In this document: positions 9,345 to 52,635 of the stretch, piece by piece
Numbering within the stretch: the stretch's first letter is position 1
Layout of the letters: each line of letters opens with the position of its first letter
DNA from: Tubulanus polymorphus
Lineage: Eukaryota; Animalia; Nemertea
Reading direction: 5' to 3'
DNA length: 64,000 nucleotides
Assembly (NCBI RefSeq): GCF_964204645.1
Contig: NC_134031.1
Location: 1,054,001 to 1,118,000, forward strand
Notes under the pieces: generated by a model
What the model was told of the DNA's origin: nothing
Seen by the model: the letters and a program-made list of their open reading frames with translations, nothing else
Database searches by the model: none
Made by a program: the position numbers and the translations under genes

Positions 9345-11469
9345 GTAATTTGTATGGTAATTACTAAGAATGCGGGATTCCGCGAGATTTCGCGAGATGA
9401 AGGGTTGTTGTAATTCGTGTGCGTAGTAATTAGTCACCATCAACATCACCGTCATCTTCACCGGGATGAACATAATAGCGATTCTCCTCTAGGCCGAAAA
9501 AATAATTGAAATCTTGCCAATCAAAATACTCGCCTTCGAAGGACACTCGCCTTATCCGAGGCTGTCATCTGCGCTTATGGAACATGATTAATTAGCAAAT
9601 GGCGAATACAGGTAACCAGCGAGAGAGAGTTTGCTGAGAGATACTGAGCGGCTTAATGTAACCCGGCTGAAAAAATACACCCAACATTGAAAACAAGTAC
9701 GAATAGGGAAGATCTATCGAAGCTATTGTCGGTGTTCGGATCCTGATCAGCAGATTCTATATTCGAGCATCTTTTCATATTCATTTTGTCTTTATGTTTC
9801 TGGACAAAACTTTCCGAATAGAATAGAATCGATTGAGATTACAGGCAGTTATCAAATCAGATAAAAACGTTGCTTTTGGTTTCCCAAGACTAACCGTATT
9901 GTATTGTTAATCTAATCTCGGCGGGACCACGGCATCGTTCGTTGCCAGCACGCTGTAAACAGCTTGACTTTTATGTCCCGATTCTTCATAGTTTTCCGGA
10001 GCCAATTTTCTTCTTCAGCAGTTTAAATGGAGAATAGCTAAAGGTCAATAGGTGCACTTTCGACCATCATGAAGACCGAATCGAACATTGTCTCTCCCCA
10101 CCTCCTCTCTCTCTCTCTCTCTCTCGCTATCTAACTCTCCATTGCTATTGCTATTCACATGTAATTACACTCAGCTAGTTCTCCAGCGGAATCAGTCTTA
10201 TATTGAAGGATAAATCGAAAATAACCGAGTGATAATAGCCTCGAATACCGGTCAGATTTATAATCGACTGAGGAAGCGGTCTTATTTGTATCGAATCGCG
10301 AGAATTACCCGAATGTATACAGCTGTGATAGTTGAAAAACATGTATCAAGAAATATCCAAGAATAACCAAATAAACTAGGACACAAGGGACAGAGGATCC
10401 TGAACAATCTATTGGATATATAACAATTATATTTGCAAAAAAGGCAGAAAATTTTGAGAGAAAAAATTTCTGGGAGAAGGGGACAACAGCGCCCTGCACC
10501 GCTAGGTGATTGAAATTTCCACAATTCGTGTCTACAAAAACTATTGATTTGAGTCATACATATTGCTATTTAGAAAATTTGTAATTTTTACATTTCACTT
10601 ACGGCAACTCGAAGGGAGTATGATGTATTTGTAGAATAGAAACAGTTTGAGTGAACTCGTCAACCTGAAACGCGCTCGCGTTTAAATCAATAAATGGCTA
10701 CTGGTGTTCACGCGTCTTGACTGAAACGTTTTAAAAACTCAATGAAAAGAAGCATTGGTTTAATTTCCTGACGGTGATGAGGTTTTTATTGATTGTCTTT
10801 GTGAGGTAGTGTAGCTCCACGCAGAGAGGAATCGCGTCTCAATGGAAACTGCACGGTGTCCGACCGTCGTGATCAGACTGGGAGAGGGAGGGGGCTACAT
10901 CGATATAAAAAATAACTACTACTCTTATACAAGATTAGATGATTTAAGCATAGTTAGACGCAGGGTTGTGCTGCGGACTGCGATCCGGTTACCGCAGGCT
11001 ACAGATGGACGACTGTACTGTATGTAGCTTGGTGAATATTTTGATGTAATCGTATTATCCGAAGCTTCGGTTTGCTCCCAATATTTCTACCAGGCCAATT
11101 GAATTACCGGCAACAAATTGCATTGACAATCGTCTAATGCGAAAGTATAAGTTATTGTATATATCATACACGCAGTTCATATCGGTCGGGAGCTGTTGGA
11201 CTGTGGGTGACCGGGTTTCTTAGACTCACGCCGAAATCAACGAATATTACTTACTGCTGACCCTCGCGTTCCAGTGGACGTTACAATAAGCAGCAAACAG
11301 TAGGCCCAGGGACTGTAATAATTCGCTTACGAAAACTTCAAATAATTTTGTTAATTAGTGTGGAAAATGCTTTGGGCAATAAACGTATCGAACTCGTGAA
11401 AACCTTCAAACTCATTAATTAGTTCCGAGCGAAGCCACATTCGCTAGTTCACATCATTACCATTGCAGG

Positions 11470-11730: not shown

Positions 11731-13530
11731 ATTCTGACTCGGCATCAATCATTGATTTAAACGAGAGACTAAGAGATATTTGAATTCATCTCAATGTGTT
11801 GTGGTTACTTGCGCAGATGATGTCATTGATTTCAATAGGTCGACCGAAATATCGGCGTCTGCGGCTACGACGTCGCGTTGAGTGGACCCGATAGTTAATG
11901 TACCACGAGAAAGCTTGATAGAACGCGTGTAAACCGATGTTATTGGTTCCCATCGGAAAACAGACGAATACTGAACGATTCATGTTGACTTTGAACTTGG
12001 CAAAACCATTCTAAACCCCAGATAGCAACTGGCGTGGCGAGCGGCCTGGGAATATCTCAACGAATATCTTTAACGAACAAACGACGTTCCCGATTCGACT
12101 GTGGCAATCGAGGATCCACCAGGGGTCACTTGTGTGTATGCGGATAACGATATGTGAATTATTCCCAGATTCAATTTTAATCCATCCTTAATTTTCTAAA
12201 TTCTATGAATAATGGATACAAACTACATTTTCTATGGACCCTAAAGATAAATCTGAGTTGGGCACAATTGGCCTAAATTTTGGAATTAAATTAGGAGGCA
12301 AAAAAGCTGTAAGAAATGTCATTGAAGCATGTTTTATATCGACGAGTGTTGTCCTATCGATACACGCGCCATCTAGCGGGATAGCTGGTGACATGATCAC
12401 AATTTAGAAGCCAGTACTTGTTTTCGAATATTAAAGGTGCCCTTGTATAAAAAGAAATGTTCCGAGAATATTTCGTTTTCGTCGCGAGGATAAATATTAA
12501 TGTACCGTAGCACTTAATAATGAACGCATTATTCTGAACGATAGGAAATCTGTAGATTGAAGGACACCTCATAGTGTCTGCTTATAAACCACGCAGCAAT
12601 ATTTGTTCCAATTAACTAACTGAATTATGACGAATCGGCGGCTACTGGTTCCAGGCGGTTTATTAATACAAACTCAATAATTAAAATTCGATAATTAATA
12701 TTTGTAGTCGGAGGGAGTATACACTCTCGACTGTGCGTGAGAGATCCATTCAATACACACTGGAGGCATTAACCAGGAATTCCCAGTGATTCTATAGACC
12801 CGAGGGCCTGAGTTCTTACAGAACAACTTCACATTTCATTAGTCCTTGTAACACGATAGCGATGAAATTTTGAAATGTAACGACGTTCTATGAAACGAAC
12901 CCAGTTTAATTGGCAGCGCAGCGACTAGTTGCCCATTCAGTGCTTAGATCTAAGATCTATCTTATTTGTGTAGCTAATTTAACACTTATTAAGACCAGCC
13001 TTCAGATAAGATTTAAGAACACGTTAGGACTCGAGTCACGACTGTACGACTCGACCTAGGACTAACTAGGTAAACCGTAATGACTAATGATGATATCCCT
13101 TGTTGGTTTGTTAATAAGTTAAAGGGGATGACATACGGATAATGGTGATGTATACATCTTCCTCACCTGAGGGAGAATATTAATTAAACTTAAATGAAAT
13201 ATTTAGATACGTGAACTAATGACAAAAACTACCTCACAAACCACTAATGATTTGTAAATCAATTCCACTCATTGGTTGTTTAAGGACAGAAAGATTTTCG
13301 ACGACACGTATGGCTATTTGTCTCTCTATGGCTGGACACGTATGGCTATTTGTACCCTCTCTCACCGCCCCAGCTGAACGTGTGAAGCGCTGGTTTTGAA
13401 TACGACACGGTCGGTTCGTTGATGATGTTCGCTCCCACAGCGAGGAGACAGTGAGTAGATTCTGTATCAGTGCAGTGGTTTGTGAATAGATGGAGCAGTG
13501 ACTACAGATTGAACCAGTCGTCCACCACGA

Positions 13531-16407: not shown

Positions 16408-17692
16408 CAGTTCAACTTGTGCTGTGTTTGAGAACTACAGTGGTGCCTCTTTACAGCGGACTTCACGGGACCAGATAGTTCCACTTTATTCTATATGAAA
16501 CAGACTGCTCCTAGGCCGATCTGGTTACAGATACATTTTCAATATTTTCCATGCGGTACATATTTGCATTTTCAGGTCAATATGTTTGAATAATATTCAA
16601 TGTTCGTGTCACAGGAATTAATTGAATATATTCCGAACGATGCCGCAATTCTAGCAGGTGCTCGCTTAAATTGGTGGTTCTAAATTCCGATATTATTATC
16701 AAACAACACGGTCGTTATCCTATTTTAGGGCTTGTATTATAAACCAAAGATTTTTATCGCAAAGTTCTTATCTTAAAGTATTAAAATCTATGCGAATAAT
16801 TTGACGTTTATAAGGTCTGACGTTTCGCTCAGTTTGTCTATGAAATATAAATATCCCACGATATGATAAAAATATTGTTTATTATCTAATATTTTCGAGA
16901 TTTCCTATTATTAATCGGTTGACAATTGGAATCAGATATCAATACCCGAAACTGTTTGAAAATAAACCAGCCATGTCATCAATTGTGGGATGTTTATATT
17001 TTAGCGGTTAGTTCATTTAATTATACATCAAATACACCATAATCAATGATACCAATCGTAGTAACTGTTTAATCACCGGGGTTACTTTGAAATTAAATTC
17101 ATAAACAGACGTTATGCGTATGTAAAACCTCTATTCGGTTAAATTCCATATAATCTGTTACTAATTGCTGACGTATCGGAAGTGTGAGGACGGTGTGAGC
17201 TGGCCTGAAACAAACACTAGTCACCGGGAGAGTGGAGTACGGGTATATAGCACCAGCAGCTGATGCGTCCTGAGCTCGCTGCGAACCACCGGATCGAGTT
17301 CGCTATACTCTATGTGCGGTGCGCTGTTCCAGGCTGAGCGCGGCGTCACCGCAAACATATCTGACGTTTAATTACGCTACGGTCAATTTGGGTTTTATTT
17401 TGAAAAAAAAAACTAAAAACATTTACAAACAGTTATTCCCGAGTTCTTCGTCAGAAAGCGACGCGGTTTGGGAATTTAATTACGCGTGTGTTTGTGAGAG
17501 AGTATTCATCATTTTTATCAATTTGTGTGGAATTTAAAGTTAAGTAATTTTTTCTCGCTTTGCGCGTAAAAACGGCAGCTCTCCGAGGTGTGGGTTAACG
17601 ATGTATTTCATCCGTATACAATCGTCAAACGGCGAAGGAAAGCTTCATTGAAAGTATTCTTTATTCGGTGGAGTTTGTGAAATAGATCTACG

Positions 17693-45898: not shown

Positions 45899-46286
45899 GT
45901 AAGTACTTGACCGATCTGTGGATGAAATTCAGTGTTTTCATTTTTAGGGAAGGCCACCCCTGTCATTTTAACATCTACCCCTCTGAAAATCAACTGCCCC
46001 GGTTGAAAAATTGACCGCCCCTCGACCAGAGTTGATGCTGAAGTGGCACATAGCTGCCGATTGCGCCATAAAATTTAGCTAATATTTCAATATTTTGAGA
46101 GAACCCTCCAAACCTTCGACCAAAAGCGTTGTAACTTTGGCTAATGCATGTAAATAGCCCCTCTATATTCCCCACTTAATGGCGAACACTGGATTTTAAC
46201 AATTATCGTGAAAATTAGTAAAATAGTCCTTGAATACGCTGTCGATTCACCGTCTTTTCTAAATTTGTCGATTTTCTTTTTTACAG

Positions 46287-46426
46287 GAAAAAACGGAAGC
46301 ATACTTCCTAGGAATATTTTGTATAGAAGCGTTACTGAAAATAGTCGCGTTAGGATTTGTATTACATAAAGGATCATATCTTCATAATATTTGGAACATA
46401 ATGGATTTTGTAGTCGTAGTAACAGG
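46287..46426 (+). CDS. cac: Cav2 exon IS2-IS3: [47 protein letters not shown]
   Basis: 140 nt, ttacag acceptor and GTAAGT donor, canonical sequence. Confidence 0.97.
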
Positions 46427-47679
46427 GTAAGTAGAAACCCCCGAGAGCCAGTTCCGCAGTTTTATGTTCAGATTTGACTCTTAAAGAGATCTAAAGAAAT
46501 GAACTATTCTAACTCTTTAACGGTTGAATTTCACCAATAATCATTATTAATCGGGCCAGTTTTGATTTGTTTCTACCGATTCCGGAATACTGGTGGGTCC
46601 GTTTCAACGGATACGCGCTCGACCTATTTTGGAATAGCAGTCTGTAAAACCTGAACGACCGGCAGAGAGTTTGTAATCTCTGGAATTGTTATAACTAAAC
46701 CAGAAAACGTTTTATCGAAAACCTACCTTTATTTCAAAACTAATGACAGAAAACTAGAGTGAAATTTTGATTATTGATATGATGCAGTGAGTGGTCCATC
46801 AGTTGCCCACCCTAGAAATGTGTAAAAGAGGGTATCACAACTATTGAAATTTAAGCCTATTTCATCGCTCAAATTTCACAGACATTTCAGTAACACAAAG
46901 TTGATTGTATCCACCATCTTGAAGCACCAGCACTAACTATGATTACCACTTAATCCTAAAATCCAACTGAAAGTCCTGTAGATCCCAACTATTTAAACTG
47001 AATCATCGTCAACCCTACTCTATGTAATCTAGGCCTACAGAACGTCCTTCACTGGGAACTGTGTTTCGATATAGTGCCCTCTGCTACGATGAAAGTTTGC
47101 CTTGTATACAATGTCTATGTGGTGACCGCAATTAGTCGTGGTGACCAGTCAAGTGTGGTGGTAACTACTCACTTGGCATAGAGCCTATTATTCTCCGATA
47201 ACTTGTCCGGCCTATTGCCTGAAATTTTCACTATTTTCCTAATACAAGGAATAATGATTTTTTAATACATTTTTCAACGGCCATTCTTTAGAAGGGCTCA
47301 TATTTCACTAATACACATGGCAAAACTAGAATATATAAAAAAGATTCAAAACATAATTTTTTCAGCTCATAGTATCAACTTATATTTCCGCTTTGCAAGT
47401 TCAATTAAGATGTTAGAAACTCATAAAGTGCTCATTCAGGCGTAGAGGGTTCACGTTTTCGCACAAGTATAATTTCATTTTGACTTCTTAATCTTTTGTC
47501 TACTAGTGTTATTATTTATCAGAAAACCAAGATCAATTGTTATTATCCATTTTAGAATTTCATTTATATTTCTGTCTATTTTTGACTAACAAACAATGTT
47601 TTCTGTGGGTCGTTCAATTGATTTTTAGTGCCGTAGATCGAAATAAACTGGATTAATTGTGTTTTCGTTATTTAACCAG

Positions 47680-47771
47680 GTTATTAACATTTTTTGTTCC
47701 GGGGTTCGATCAGCCTGGTGCTCGAGCCCTCAGAGTGGTTCGACCATTGAAGTTGGTCACCGGGTTTGAGA
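47680..47771 (+). CDS. cac: Cav2 mutually exclusive IS3-S4 exon A: LLTFFVPGFDQPGARALRVVRPLKLVTGFE(S)
   Basis: 92 nt, ccag and GTAAGT boundaries, phase 2 to 1, S4 pattern RxxRxxRxxK. Confidence 0.88.
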
Positions 47772-47982
47772 GTAAGTCAGATAGAGCTCGCAGTCAATTA
47801 TTGCATCACATATTTAGAGATGAGTTTTCTGCGTAGGTCATACATATGCAGCAGTATATGCATTATTTGTTAATTATGTTATGGCTTTACAGCTAGATAG
47901 ATAGACCCCATCAATATTTCAGTTGATTTTTTTTTCATCACTAAACTGTAAAGTAACATCTCTTCTATGATTGATTTACTAG

Positions 47983-48077
47983 GATTTGGTATTGTATTTC
48001 CCCGAGCTCGCCGGCGGGACAACACGCGCGCTACTACAGGGTTTTACGCGTGTGTAAATTATTGAAAAGGTTCCACC
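47983..48077 (+). CDS. cac: Cav2 mutually exclusive IS3-S4 exon B (divergent): IWYCISPSSPAGQHARYYRVLRVCKLLKRFH(R)
   Basis: 95 nt, ttactag and GTAAGT boundaries, same phases (2 to 1), no stops. The RxxRxxRxxK register sits at exactly the same distance from the donor as in exons A and C. Confidence 0.75.
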
Positions 48078-48128
48078 GTAAGTCGTGGTCAAACTTGTGA
48101 AAGAAGAAGTGGATGAACCGGGTTATTA

Positions 48129-48312
48129 GCCGCATTCACACCATTTAGAACGGTCTAATTAGAATAAATTTTGGGGTAAATACTCGTGGTGACATCTTGT
48201 GGGGCCAGCGATAATTATCTGAAGCCATGTGTGTGAACTCGCACTCTGATTTGGCCCATCTCACGGACGGACTCACATAGAACGGTCTAACTAGTGATAG
48301 TGTGAATGCGCC
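48129..48312. mobile_element. MITE with TA target-site duplication, just downstream of S4 exon B
   Basis: TA|GCCGCATTCACAC...GTGTGAATGCGCC|TA; internal direct repeat TAGAACGGTCTAA.TAG. Confidence 0.65.
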
Positions 48313-49105
48313 TATTGTCTTGAGCTTGCATCTGATTCAGGGGCGGATCTAAAGGATCAGTTTCATAGTACTTCCGATCTTCTAATTTTCCTAGGCCCGC
48401 CCCTGCAGCTTTTCACCAGAAAAAAATCTTAGGGTGGAAATGAATTCAACCCTTCTACGAAAAAGAAAAAAATATCATAATCTTGTTGCTATTTGATCAC
48501 TTTTCAAAATACAGTTTGTTCCAAGCATCGAAGCATGCTGGAGCTCATATTGTCCATAGGGGTGAAGATGTACGTTACAAGTCTCGCGCAGTAATTAGCA
48601 ATTTTCAAGTAAAATCCTCACAGCGTATATAAGACCGGTTCGATCTCAGAAACACAAAGATTTGAGTATTATTACCCTCTTATATATTAAGAATGGTATT
48701 AGTATAAACGGATAATGTTATCTATGCAGAAGAAGAGAATCGGTACATTTTATATATCGATATTCTTCGTATGGTTACATTTTATAAAGCATATAATACC
48801 CAAAACGAGTAGAACATGAAAAGAGACACAAACAGTTGAAATTGGTTTCTATTTTGGCTGAGAGATGAGAAATAATGATCGTTCATTTTTTGGGGGTTTG
48901 CTATTATAGATTTGTGATCGTATTTTGTATGATATAATGCATGCTTGCTTTAAAAAGGCTCATTCAGACACGTGGATGCAACAGTCAGTAGTAAATGTGT
49001 GATGTTAGGACAATGAAGGGCATCGTTTGATGATACGGTTTTGAACTAACTCTGCTGTGTGTTTGCGCAACATCCTCAAAATTATCCAAATCCTTTTTCC
49101 TTTAG

Positions 49106-49206
49106 GTTCATAACCTTATTTGCAAATAATCAGTCCTCGTTTGATTTGAGAACACTTCGAGCGGTCAGAGTGCTGCGTCCTCTAAAACTCGTCTCTGGCA
49201 TTCCAA
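49106..49206 (+). CDS. cac: Cav2 mutually exclusive IS3-S4 exon C (canonical): [33 protein letters not shown](S)
   Basis: 101 nt, ctttag and GTACGT boundaries, canonical Cav2 IS4. Confidence 0.96.
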
Positions 49207-49922
49207 GTACGTATATATGTATATACTAATTCTGGACGTTTTATTTTTGAATTTTACACGGGATTCACAAACTGTGCATCTCATTTTTTCTCACACCATT
49301 CTTTAAATATATAAATATATATATATATGATATGATAGTACAGCATTTTGAGAAGTTGGAAGATCTCTAAATACATGTGATAATTGAAATGAGACCATTT
49401 CAATCGACGTTTAGAATTCTGTGTTCAACTAGTATTTCTAATGCTGTTCTATTCTACGCGATCAAACATTCCATGAATGTTTTCAATCGCACTCATATTT
49501 CTAATCTTTCCTATGTTTTTTGTCGATATACTTTCCCTCTGTGTGTTTTTCTGCTTATCCTCTCTTCGGTCTCACTTGTCTGTCTGTCAATAGATTTCAT
49601 TTTCAGAAATCAAATCTCTGTAAGTATTGATATAAGTCTGATTAGCTGTAGCACTGTCATTCAATATCGTCTAACAGTTTTCTGTTTTAGGCACTGGGTA
49701 TCGATTAATAGATATTTCATTGTTGTTAAATTGATCATTTTCCTGAAATTGAATTTGATAATGAGCTCTTCATCGACAAAATGAAATAAATCAATTCATT
49801 TAAGTTAAATTGCTTCGATTGAGTACTACTATTACTACAAAGGAAAATATCCGTGCCCTTAAAAATCTATTGACCTTTTCTTATGAAGAAAACGTAATAT
49901 TATCGGGTTCTTCCTATTGCAG

Positions 49923-50078
49923 GTCTTCAAGTGGTTCTGAAGTCAATCATTCGTGCTATGGCCCCACTGCTCCAGATCGGTCTCTTGGTGCTGTTCGCTA
50001 TCGTGATATTTGCCATTATAGGTTTAGAATTTTATGAAGGAAACTTCCATTTCACGTGTTTTTTGTGCAGTAGTGACC
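49923..50078 (+). CDS. cac: Cav2 exon IS4-S5 linker/IS5: [51 protein letters not shown]
   Basis: 156 nt, tgcag and GTAAGT boundaries; overlaps track ORF 49931. Confidence 0.97.
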
Positions 50079-50299
50079 GTAAGTATAATCAAAATACTTG
50101 TGAGCTAAACAACACAGGCCCCAGCTATATCGTCGAGGCATAGCTTTAAGAACTGCTTATGGTTGACCCATTTTGCTGCTATGATGTCTAAAAAACTTAT
50201 AAGACCAGTCTAAGCTTATTTTGCTCCAATAGCCAATATATCAACTTATGATTTATCATTCAAGACTGTTTTTCGACTTGTTCACGACTGCGCATCTGT

Positions 50300-50382
50300 C
50301 AGGGTTCCTACGGGTCCTTAAATTCCTCAAATACCCTCAAATTACCCTCAAATTCTGAGTTGACTGATCCGTAGGAACCCTG
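50300..50382. mobile_element. Short TIR element (CAGGGTTCCTACGG...CCGTAGGAACCCTG)
   Basis: 14-bp perfect TIRs; no clear target-site duplication. Confidence 0.6.
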
Positions 50383-50468
50383 AGTCTGGAGGCGCAGCCG
50401 TTAACCCTCCTTCCGAACTCCATTCAATGACTGCGTTTAACATAACCGTATTTTCATTTCTTTTCCAG

Positions 50469-50683
50469 CGAAAAAATTTGATACGAAGGATGAATCAAAA
50501 CCGCGGCCTTGTTCACCTACAGGTGCGACGGGTGCGTTTGTTTGCACGGAGGGTAAATCCGAATGTAACACGTACTGGGTCGGACCTAATTACGGAATAA
50601 CAAGTTTTGACAATATAGGATACGCAATGTTAACAGTGTTTCAGTGCATCACAATGGAAGGCTGGACTGATGTGTTATATTAT
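50469..50683 (+). CDS. cac: Cav2 exon domain I turret and pore loop: [16 protein letters not shown]...[34 protein letters not shown]
   Basis: 215 nt, ttccag and GTAAGT boundaries; selectivity-filter Glu in TMEGW. Confidence 0.97.
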
Positions 50684-50861
50684 GTAAGTTCTGTCGCAGG
50701 ATTTCTTATTTTCCCGAACGCAATACGGATTATTCAAGTCGAAATGGATTATCTAACGTCGCAATAATGGATTATTACGTAATTTAGTGTTACTCGATTT
50801 AGGCAACTCGCCGAAAGAATGTTCCTTTCACATTTTCAGTCGTCATATTCGGCATTTCCCG

Positions 50862-51115
50862 AGGGTGGCCACTTACCTGAAAATATGGAGAATGTCCGGG
50901 AATTCCCATTTCTTTAAAAAAAATCAGGGAATTTTATAAAAATGCTGAAAATCAGAGAAAAGTTAGGGAAATTTGATGAGATTGCTCGATGGATCACACA
51001 GTCTATGTCTTACGTATTTGACGGTGTTAATTGATTGGATTCTTAGCAGATCAAGGCAGGGAATAGTCTGGGGAAAGTCAAGGACAAATTATGTCAGATT
51101 TAAGTGGCCACCCTG
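50862..51115. mobile_element. hAT-like MITE (AGGGTGGCCACTTA...TAAGTGGCCACCCT)
   Basis: 14-bp TIRs and internal GGGAA subrepeats. Confidence 0.7.
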
Positions 51116-51237
51116 AACCAGCCCCTTATCAAGATAGTCATTACCAAGATTTGATAAATATGACATTTCTTTTCTTCGTTTTTCGGTAAGGTTTGTACGC
51201 TGTTATTGACCTATAAGGTTGTGTGTTGTCTCTTTAG

Positions 51238-51341
51238 ACAGATGATGTTTATGGTCAATCTACAAATTGGATGTACTTCATACCGTTAATCATTCTGGGC
51301 TCATTTTTAGTCCTCAATCTCGTTCTGGGCGTTTTAAGCGC
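51238..51341 (+). CDS. cac: Cav2 mutually exclusive IS6 exon a: [34 protein letters not shown](A)
   Basis: 104 nt, ctttag and GTACGT boundaries, phase 0 to 2; paralogous to the exon at 51843. Confidence 0.88.
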
Positions 51342-51842
51342 GTACGTAATTTTGTCGCCATTCGCTCGCTCGATGCTTGTGCGCAGGAAGTGGTTTGAAG
51401 CTGACCGAGCGTTAGATGTACACTTCAACTCGTATCCATTGTTTCTCTTAAAGCCTAATGCACAGATATTACCAATGTTCTGGACACTGGGCCCTTCTTC
51501 CACTGTATTCTGAACACCTTCCACCCAGTGTCCTGAACACCTTCCACAGTGTCTTTCTACAGCTTAACATTATCTAAGTCTTAAGTTTAGTTATCCAAAT
51601 GATGGTTATCAAATCATTATTCAAAGTCAAGTATCCCCAGGATATCGCAAATAGGATCTGATTTGGACCTCTATGATATACATAAAAAGCCCATGTTGTT
51701 CCCTTACGATATTTCTGTGCATTAAGCTTCACATATCCTGGATCTTCACCAGGTTCTTTCCAATGGAACTGTGTACATCTTCCGTTCAAACTAAGAACTC
51801 TTGCGGCTTGATCATATGAATTTTTTGTATATTCTTTTTCAG

Positions 51843-51946
51843 ACCGATGATGCCTTAGGGAACGGCTTCAACTGGTTTTACTTTATTCCTCTTATTATAC
51901 TAGGCTCCTTTTTTATGCTCAACCTAATTCTTGGTGTGTTAAGTGG
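51843..51946 (+). CDS. cac: Cav2 mutually exclusive IS6 exon b (canonical): [34 protein letters not shown](G)
   Basis: 104 nt, tttcag and GTAAGT boundaries, phase 0 to 2. Confidence 0.95.
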
Positions 51947-52635
51947 GTAAGTTGAACACACTGAATGAATCTTATGTCATCAAGGCCGATCTTAAAACAA
52001 AAGCATTCTCCCTTGGTAGGGATTTAAACCTGCATGGCATTGCGCAACTCAGTCATGACATGAAACCCTGCCCGATTAGCCCAAGTGGGTAGGTTAGCCG
52101 CCTCGTTCAGGCATATTTCACGGACAATGGAATCACCCTACTAGAATAAAAATACTATTTCTGATCGGCTAATAATGACATGATGGCTAAGAGAAGAAGT
52201 ACCCGCGCACTCGTGCTAATCATAGAGGTTTTTTTGTCGTGGCAGATTGTCGCGATGCTATCATGTTTGAATCCCTGCCGAGGCCGATCTTAAACAATAT
52301 GAATTCCTATCCATATCTTTCACTACAGCTCTCTATATTTTGTTGTATAGATGCGAAACTCGCCTGAGTCTGTTGCTGATCGAAGTTCGAATTTATTTTT
52401 AAAGACTTGCCTTATTTAGCATCTTTTGAAGATATATTTAGCTTGAGCCTTCGTTATCATAATTTTGCTCGACTTGCTATCAGCGATGAAACTTATTACG
52501 GCCAATTTATTCCTTTTGCTATCAAACGATCTAAATTTAAAAGATTTTTCTATATAAAAAAAAAAAGTTGTGGCGATTGCCGGAAGTTTACTTTGAGCGT
52601 TTTGTAATCGCGTTCGACTGATGAAAATCTTACAG

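Follow-up and report, generated by a model that had tools for sequence, protein, structure and literature searches.

A divergent candidate third IS4 exon in the Cav2-type calcium channel gene of Tubulanus polymorphus

Most invertebrates have a single Cav2 gene. The window analysed here, a stretch of 64,000 nucleotides from the ribbon worm Tubulanus polymorphus (contig NC_134031.1, positions 1,054,001 to 1,118,000), carries on its + strand a Cav2-type (presynaptic-type) calcium channel alpha-1 gene in which we mapped three IS4-like cassettes, named A, B and C. Unless another locus is named, the coordinates given below are those of the window, and all features of the gene are read on the + strand. 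Upstream of the cassettes, a constitutive exon encoding IS2-IS3 (46287-46426) ends in GG, in phase 2, and is followed by gtaagt; its identity to numerous Cav2 exon fragments of invertebrates that carry Pfam Ion_trans is 74-90%. Downstream, the S4-S5 linker and IS5 are encoded by a second constitutive exon (49923-50078), whose initial GT yields a Ser codon after A or C and an Arg codon after B. Exon A (47680-47771; 92 nt) has a cag acceptor and a gtaagt donor, and its peptide ends in LKLVTGFE; its S4 contains Pro at the position of the outermost charge, plus three Arg and one Lys. Exon C (49106-49206; 101 nt, with a tag acceptor and a gtacgt donor) is of the canonical type, its last 22 residues being identical to the IS4 of human Cav2.1 and Cav2.2. 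The candidate exon B (47983-48077; 95 nt) is located on the coding strand between the IS2-IS3 and the S4-S5/IS5 exons, with 211 nt separating it from A and 1028 nt from C. Further along the gene we observed two tandem IS6-like exons (51271-51340 and 51801-51946, with the sequence ..IPLIILGSF..), which appear to form another either/or pair of domain I.

Exon B comprises a split Gly codon, 31 codons and a split Arg codon. At the entry junction, the GG that closes the IS2-IS3 exon at 46426 joins the first base of B, a G, to form the Gly codon, and at the exit junction the last base of B, a C, joins the GT at 49923-49924 to form CGT. The intervening positions, 47984-48076, read in frame as a 31-residue peptide, the same one that had been quoted in the first-pass annotation of this DNA. 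That annotation had also remarked that B was missing from the mechanical list of open reading frames, and this is borne out, since the frame of B has no usable start codon. The splice signals were read from the sequence: the 3' end of the intron between A and B (47918-47982) contains a T-run, candidate branch points (cactaaac and gtaac), a pyrimidine-rich tract (14 of 20 positions) and a tag acceptor at 47980-47982, and the donor at 48078-48083 is the consensus gtaagt.

The layout of an IS4 cassette is kept in B, where five hydrophobic residues corresponding to the end of S3 are followed by a linker rich in Pro, Ser and Gly and then by S4. The S4 segment has Gln first and then three Arg and two Lys, each at every third position. 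Four of these basic residues share their register with A and C, so that all four in-register charges of A are retained, and the further Lys is found one turn deeper. The start of the S4-S5 linker is also basic, with a Lys-Arg-Phe-His-Arg run. On the other hand, B has neither the Pro in S4 nor the Gly in the S4-S5 turn, both of them invariant in every other A-type or C-type exon that we examined, and it agrees with either neighbour at no more than about 8 of its last 22 positions. When B was aligned to C from the 3' end without gaps, we found all the substitutions that had been listed for it (outermost Arg to Gln, AV to YY, PL to VC and VSGIPS to LKRFHR). Searched alone against Pfam, neither A nor B gave a match, both being too short, and C matched Ion_trans weakly.

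The lengths of A, B and C (92, 95 and 101 nt) are all 2 mod 3, and the three exons have the same entry and exit phase. Therefore only the inclusion of a single one of them preserves the frame, while double inclusion or complete skipping leads to early stops. Indeed, shifted-frame readings meet stops in B after A, in C after A or B, and in the IS5 exon after skipping all three. The exclusivity of A, B and C would then be enforced at least by the reading frame. The same phase logic could serve a different purpose, in which B would be a regulatory poison or decoy exon whose encoded peptide is irrelevant: its inclusion with A or C would shift the frame and trigger mRNA decay, or its splice sites would compete with those of its neighbours and tune the choice between A and C. 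The strong splice signals of B, only 211 nt after A, and the premature stops produced by its co-inclusion with A or C agree with such a role. However, a decoy has no need of an open frame in the productive phase, nor of a hydrophobic S3 end followed by five basic residues in S4 register, and we consider this explanation improbable.

The resemblance of B to an S4 helix was compared with the background of the window. Taken by itself, a series of four basic residues spaced three positions apart occurs often, with about 60 matches in the six frames, and the local BLOSUM score of B against C alone (27) is unremarkable, at about the top 1% of candidates. By these two measures B could be an intronic frame that resembles S4 by chance. 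Position-aware scores give a different picture. We scored the 22 residues before each in-phase GT against A or C (end-anchored score). A segment counted as a complete candidate when it was bounded by AG and GT, stayed open in the required phase and was 80-116 nt long, with a length of 2 mod 3. Among 1029 donor-anchored open segments of the + strand, B ranks third by end-anchored score, behind C and A. The window contains 564 complete in-phase candidates on both strands, of which only 21 fall between the IS3 and IS5 exons. A score of 20 is reached by A, B and C alone, and none of the 561 others equals the score of B. In addition, the donor of B is one of just 22 GTAAGT sequences among 3728 GT sites on the strand (0.6%). 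When these position-aware scores and the rarity of GTAAGT are combined with an acceptor in phase, the expected length class and the right intron, the joint probability falls well below 1e-3. A chance origin of B is rejected, and we regard it as very improbable. The earlier proposal that B derives from the IS4 cassette and is genuinely exon-like was upheld.

By end-anchored score B is closer to the A type (20-21) than to the C type (11), and its nucleotide identity follows the same order, with 0.39-0.40 to the A type and 0.30-0.34 to the C type, when about 0.27 is expected at random. Since this identity is near random, the homology of B to its paralogues rests on position, register and pattern. 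B resembles A-type exons in its lack of the outermost Arg, in a Phe two residues before the exon end, in the gtaagt donor, in phase and in its place upstream of C; it differs from them in lacking the S4 Pro and the Thr-Gly turn and in being found only in this genome. Because B shares the Phe near the exon end and the donor with the A type, it is best viewed as a diverged tandem copy of A, and tandem duplication of an A-type exon is its most likely origin. The duplication was not recent, the similarity of the flanking introns having gone (homology among those of A, B and C is not significant, p about 0.08). B would then be a tandem copy that has diverged almost to saturation. In the 268-Mb assembly exon B is single-copy at both the DNA and the protein level, and a search with the peptide of A returned only its own match.

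Several other features of the surrounding introns were considered. A 14-nt motif, TTCA[AG]TTGATTTTT, occurs at 47613-47626 and 47918-47931, about 65 nt upstream of the acceptors of A and B, and it is complementary to 49860-49873, about 55 nt before the IS5 exon; a perfect 12-nt partner is located at 49586-49597. We attribute this complementarity to chance and discarded it as a docking/selector RNA pairing, because the motif is short, AT-rich and not significant (p about 0.08) and its pairing would loop out all three exons. The CpG richness of B was set aside as uninformative, given that the window has no CpG depletion (observed/expected 1.16) and that B is only in the top 5% of windows. An Rfam scan of 46400-50000 gave no match. 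About 80 nt downstream of the donor of B, and excluding B itself, there is a dispersed repeat (48159-48315) with inverted ends (48127-48144 and 48297-48314) and an internal 17-nt direct repeat, present in at least 35 copies in the genome at 66-89% identity.

We searched a protein collection by word index with the IS2-IS3 exon for transcript fragments that continue into an IS4 exon. The matches were almost exclusively genomic single-exon open reading frames ending at the splice donor, and these fragments were used as anchors for the downstream DNA of other animals. In four other invertebrate assemblies the IS2-IS3 exon is followed by a 92-nt A-type exon with a GTAAGT donor (L005:12131-12222; L002:16902-16993; L008, donor at 12113; L009, donor at 10832) and then by a C-type exon with the ending ..VSGIP. 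Including that of Tubulanus, the A-type exons of five species are 92 nt each, end in LKLVTGFE and share 64-82% nucleotide identity over their last 67 nt. The A/C exon pair is old and conserved. Outside this group, Biomphalaria glabrata has a single A-like exon in the interval, and the dragonfly Ladona fulva (L007, KZ308565.1) has two IS4 exons, with SRIP and SGIP ends and donors at 16430 and 19209.

The syntenic search that had been proposed for B did not find an orthologue: in the four other assemblies that have the A/C pair, the interval between the two exons contains nothing like B. This is a weak test, as these assemblies may not be from close relatives of the worm. A third IS4 cassette does have a precedent, since one of these assemblies has three. 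Its additional cassette (L002:18997-19082, ena:ERZ22147071:ctg31260l) lies between the A-type and C-type exons, is 86 nt long and departs little from the canonical A-type sequence, with Lys in the place of the outermost charge; L008, whose IS2-IS3 exon is 90% identical, lacks a cassette of this type. At the protein level, a HMMER search of B against 1.84 billion protein representatives returned six matches, all of them tandem-repeat junk and none an ion channel, and a comparison with the sequences of the PDB gave nothing at E up to 10. The nearest named clusters to B in the ESM Atlas are Ion_trans fragments (0.78-0.80), a lead that lends weak support.

The intact frame, phase and splice sites of so divergent an exon had been taken by the first-pass annotation as a sign of selection. 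The usual marks of a pseudo-exon are absent from B, as its frame is open, its phase is intact and its AG and GTAAGT are present. We simulated 20,000 neutral decays of an A-type exon down to the observed 40% nucleotide identity, and the fraction that kept an open frame, AG/GT and at least four basic positions was 5e-5 or fewer. The state of exon B is incompatible with long neutral decay, and the argument for selection survives both the chance test and this simulation. The preserved features, on which selection would have acted, are the splice sites, the length class and the basic S4 pattern at every third residue.

The main rival to a used exon is that B is a pseudo-exon, either a former third IS4 cassette that died recently or one with noise-level inclusion, whose frame and splice sites would be intact merely because too little time has elapsed. 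In favour of this are its extreme divergence at the S4 Pro and the S4-S5 Gly, which no other A or C exon has changed, the lack of an orthologue in four genomes that retain the A/C pair and the lack of a relative among the protein representatives and in the PDB. However, the divergence could not have been neutral, since simulated decay so rarely keeps the frame, the splice sites and the four in-register charges. Moreover, the perfect gtaagt donor has been retained, a new in-register Lys has been gained, and no indels have disrupted the 2 mod 3 length class. We therefore hold a dead or dying exon to be a serious possibility that nevertheless falls short of probable. Variation adds little: in a second individual, seen in the sequencing contigs described below, the single difference inside B is a synonymous change (48016 G>C, in an Ala codon), which has almost no weight. 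The same individual has a 1-nt length change in the T-run upstream of B.

With some confidence, we favour the view that the worm's single Cav2 gene has a cluster of mutually exclusive IS4 exons, to which B was added as a third, lineage-specific member. We infer that B is spliced into mRNA and that its use excludes A and C. The domain-I sensor of the resulting isoform would have Gln in place of the outermost Arg (Pro in the A type) and thus one outer charge fewer than with C. The next three Arg and the Lys would be kept, the S4 proline would be lost, an extra Lys would lie one turn deeper and the S4-S5 linker would begin with a basic stretch.

The position of this Gln deserves some attention. 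In human CACNA1A, R192Q is a mutation of familial hemiplegic migraine 1 and is tabulated, among S4 charge-neutralising channelopathy mutations, at the outermost IS4 charge (PMC3372090). The equation of the Gln of B with human Cav2.1 R192, made in the first-pass annotation, is consistent with the identity of exon C to human IS4 over 22 residues and with the tabulated place of R192Q (PMC3372090). What did not hold is the idea that the loss of the outermost Arg is peculiar to B, for the A-type exon of all five invertebrate Cav2 genes has Pro at the R192-equivalent position, and the A-like exon of Biomphalaria has Pro at the outermost-charge position too. The missing outer charge is therefore a trait of the A type and not an innovation of B, which most likely inherited it from an A-type ancestor. 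B does resemble R192Q in having Gln in register at this position, but the human mutation changes one residue of an S4 that is canonical in all other respects. In B about 14 of 22 positions are different, so what is known of R192Q is not transferable to its Gln. The context differs as well: R192Q is a disease mutation, and the conserved A-type exon is naturally without that charge. The presence of A-type exons lacking the migraine-linked Arg in several invertebrates makes this charge neutralisation a normal feature of channel isoforms, and not only one of disease.

Either/or splicing at IS4 of invertebrate Cav2 is already published for flies (PMC11828482). In cacophony, the exons IS4A and IS4B are mutually exclusive, are both 99 bp long and differ at 13 of 33 residues while keeping a canonical S4 core, and the choice between them sets the activation voltage as well as synaptic localisation and arrival at the active zone (PMC11828482). 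Like the fly exons, the cassettes described here are alternatives that encode the last part of IS3, the linker and IS4, in a channel of the same type. In the fly pair one exon is used at a time and the variants differ in the number of positive charges. Unlike cacophony, with two exons of equal length, the Tubulanus gene has three, of 92, 95 and 101 nt. The SRIP/SGIP pair of Ladona fulva matches IS4A/IS4B, of which one fly exon has one extra positive charge. The duplication behind the insect pair seems to have been separate from that of the A/C pair. Outside insects, we found no description of an A-type/C-type IS4 pair in the literature, and a splice survey of Aplysia Cav2 reports none at IS4 (PMC5818475).

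By analogy with the fly channel, a changed voltage dependence would be the likeliest effect of including B. We propose, more tentatively, that B is used in a subset of neurons or other cells and gives the worm's only Cav2 channel a first voltage-sensing domain (VSD-I) unlike any described, which would lack both the outermost charge and the S4 proline and would have one more Lys on the inner side and a strongly basic beginning of the S4-S5 linker; its activation voltage or kinetics would be strongly shifted, or VSD-I would be decoupled or leaky. B would then amount to a natural experiment on the tolerance of the IS4 helix. If it is used, an S4 reshaped at nearly every non-charge position with its charges kept would indicate how far a working voltage sensor can drift, and it would supply a natural variant for tests of altered gating and of gating-pore current.

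Finally, we aligned to 46200-52000 the contigs of three sequencing runs from one study (X1, X2 and X3), none of them recorded as RNA. Introns and exons were covered alike, and no GT..AG splice joints were found in these contigs, which identifies the three runs as DNA. Some minor observations were made on the same contigs. In all three runs, contig depth rises to hundreds or thousands at 50856-51243 (about 14,000 versus about 25 in X1), with many loose ends; this segment of the intron that precedes the first IS6 exon is a repeat of very high copy number. Individuals also differ by intronic length polymorphisms. A 6-nt deletion at 47029 is present in all three runs and, in X1, stands beside the reference form (depth 12.6 of 29.8). 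A further intronic deletion, of 21 nt at 51497, is present in X2 and X3 only.
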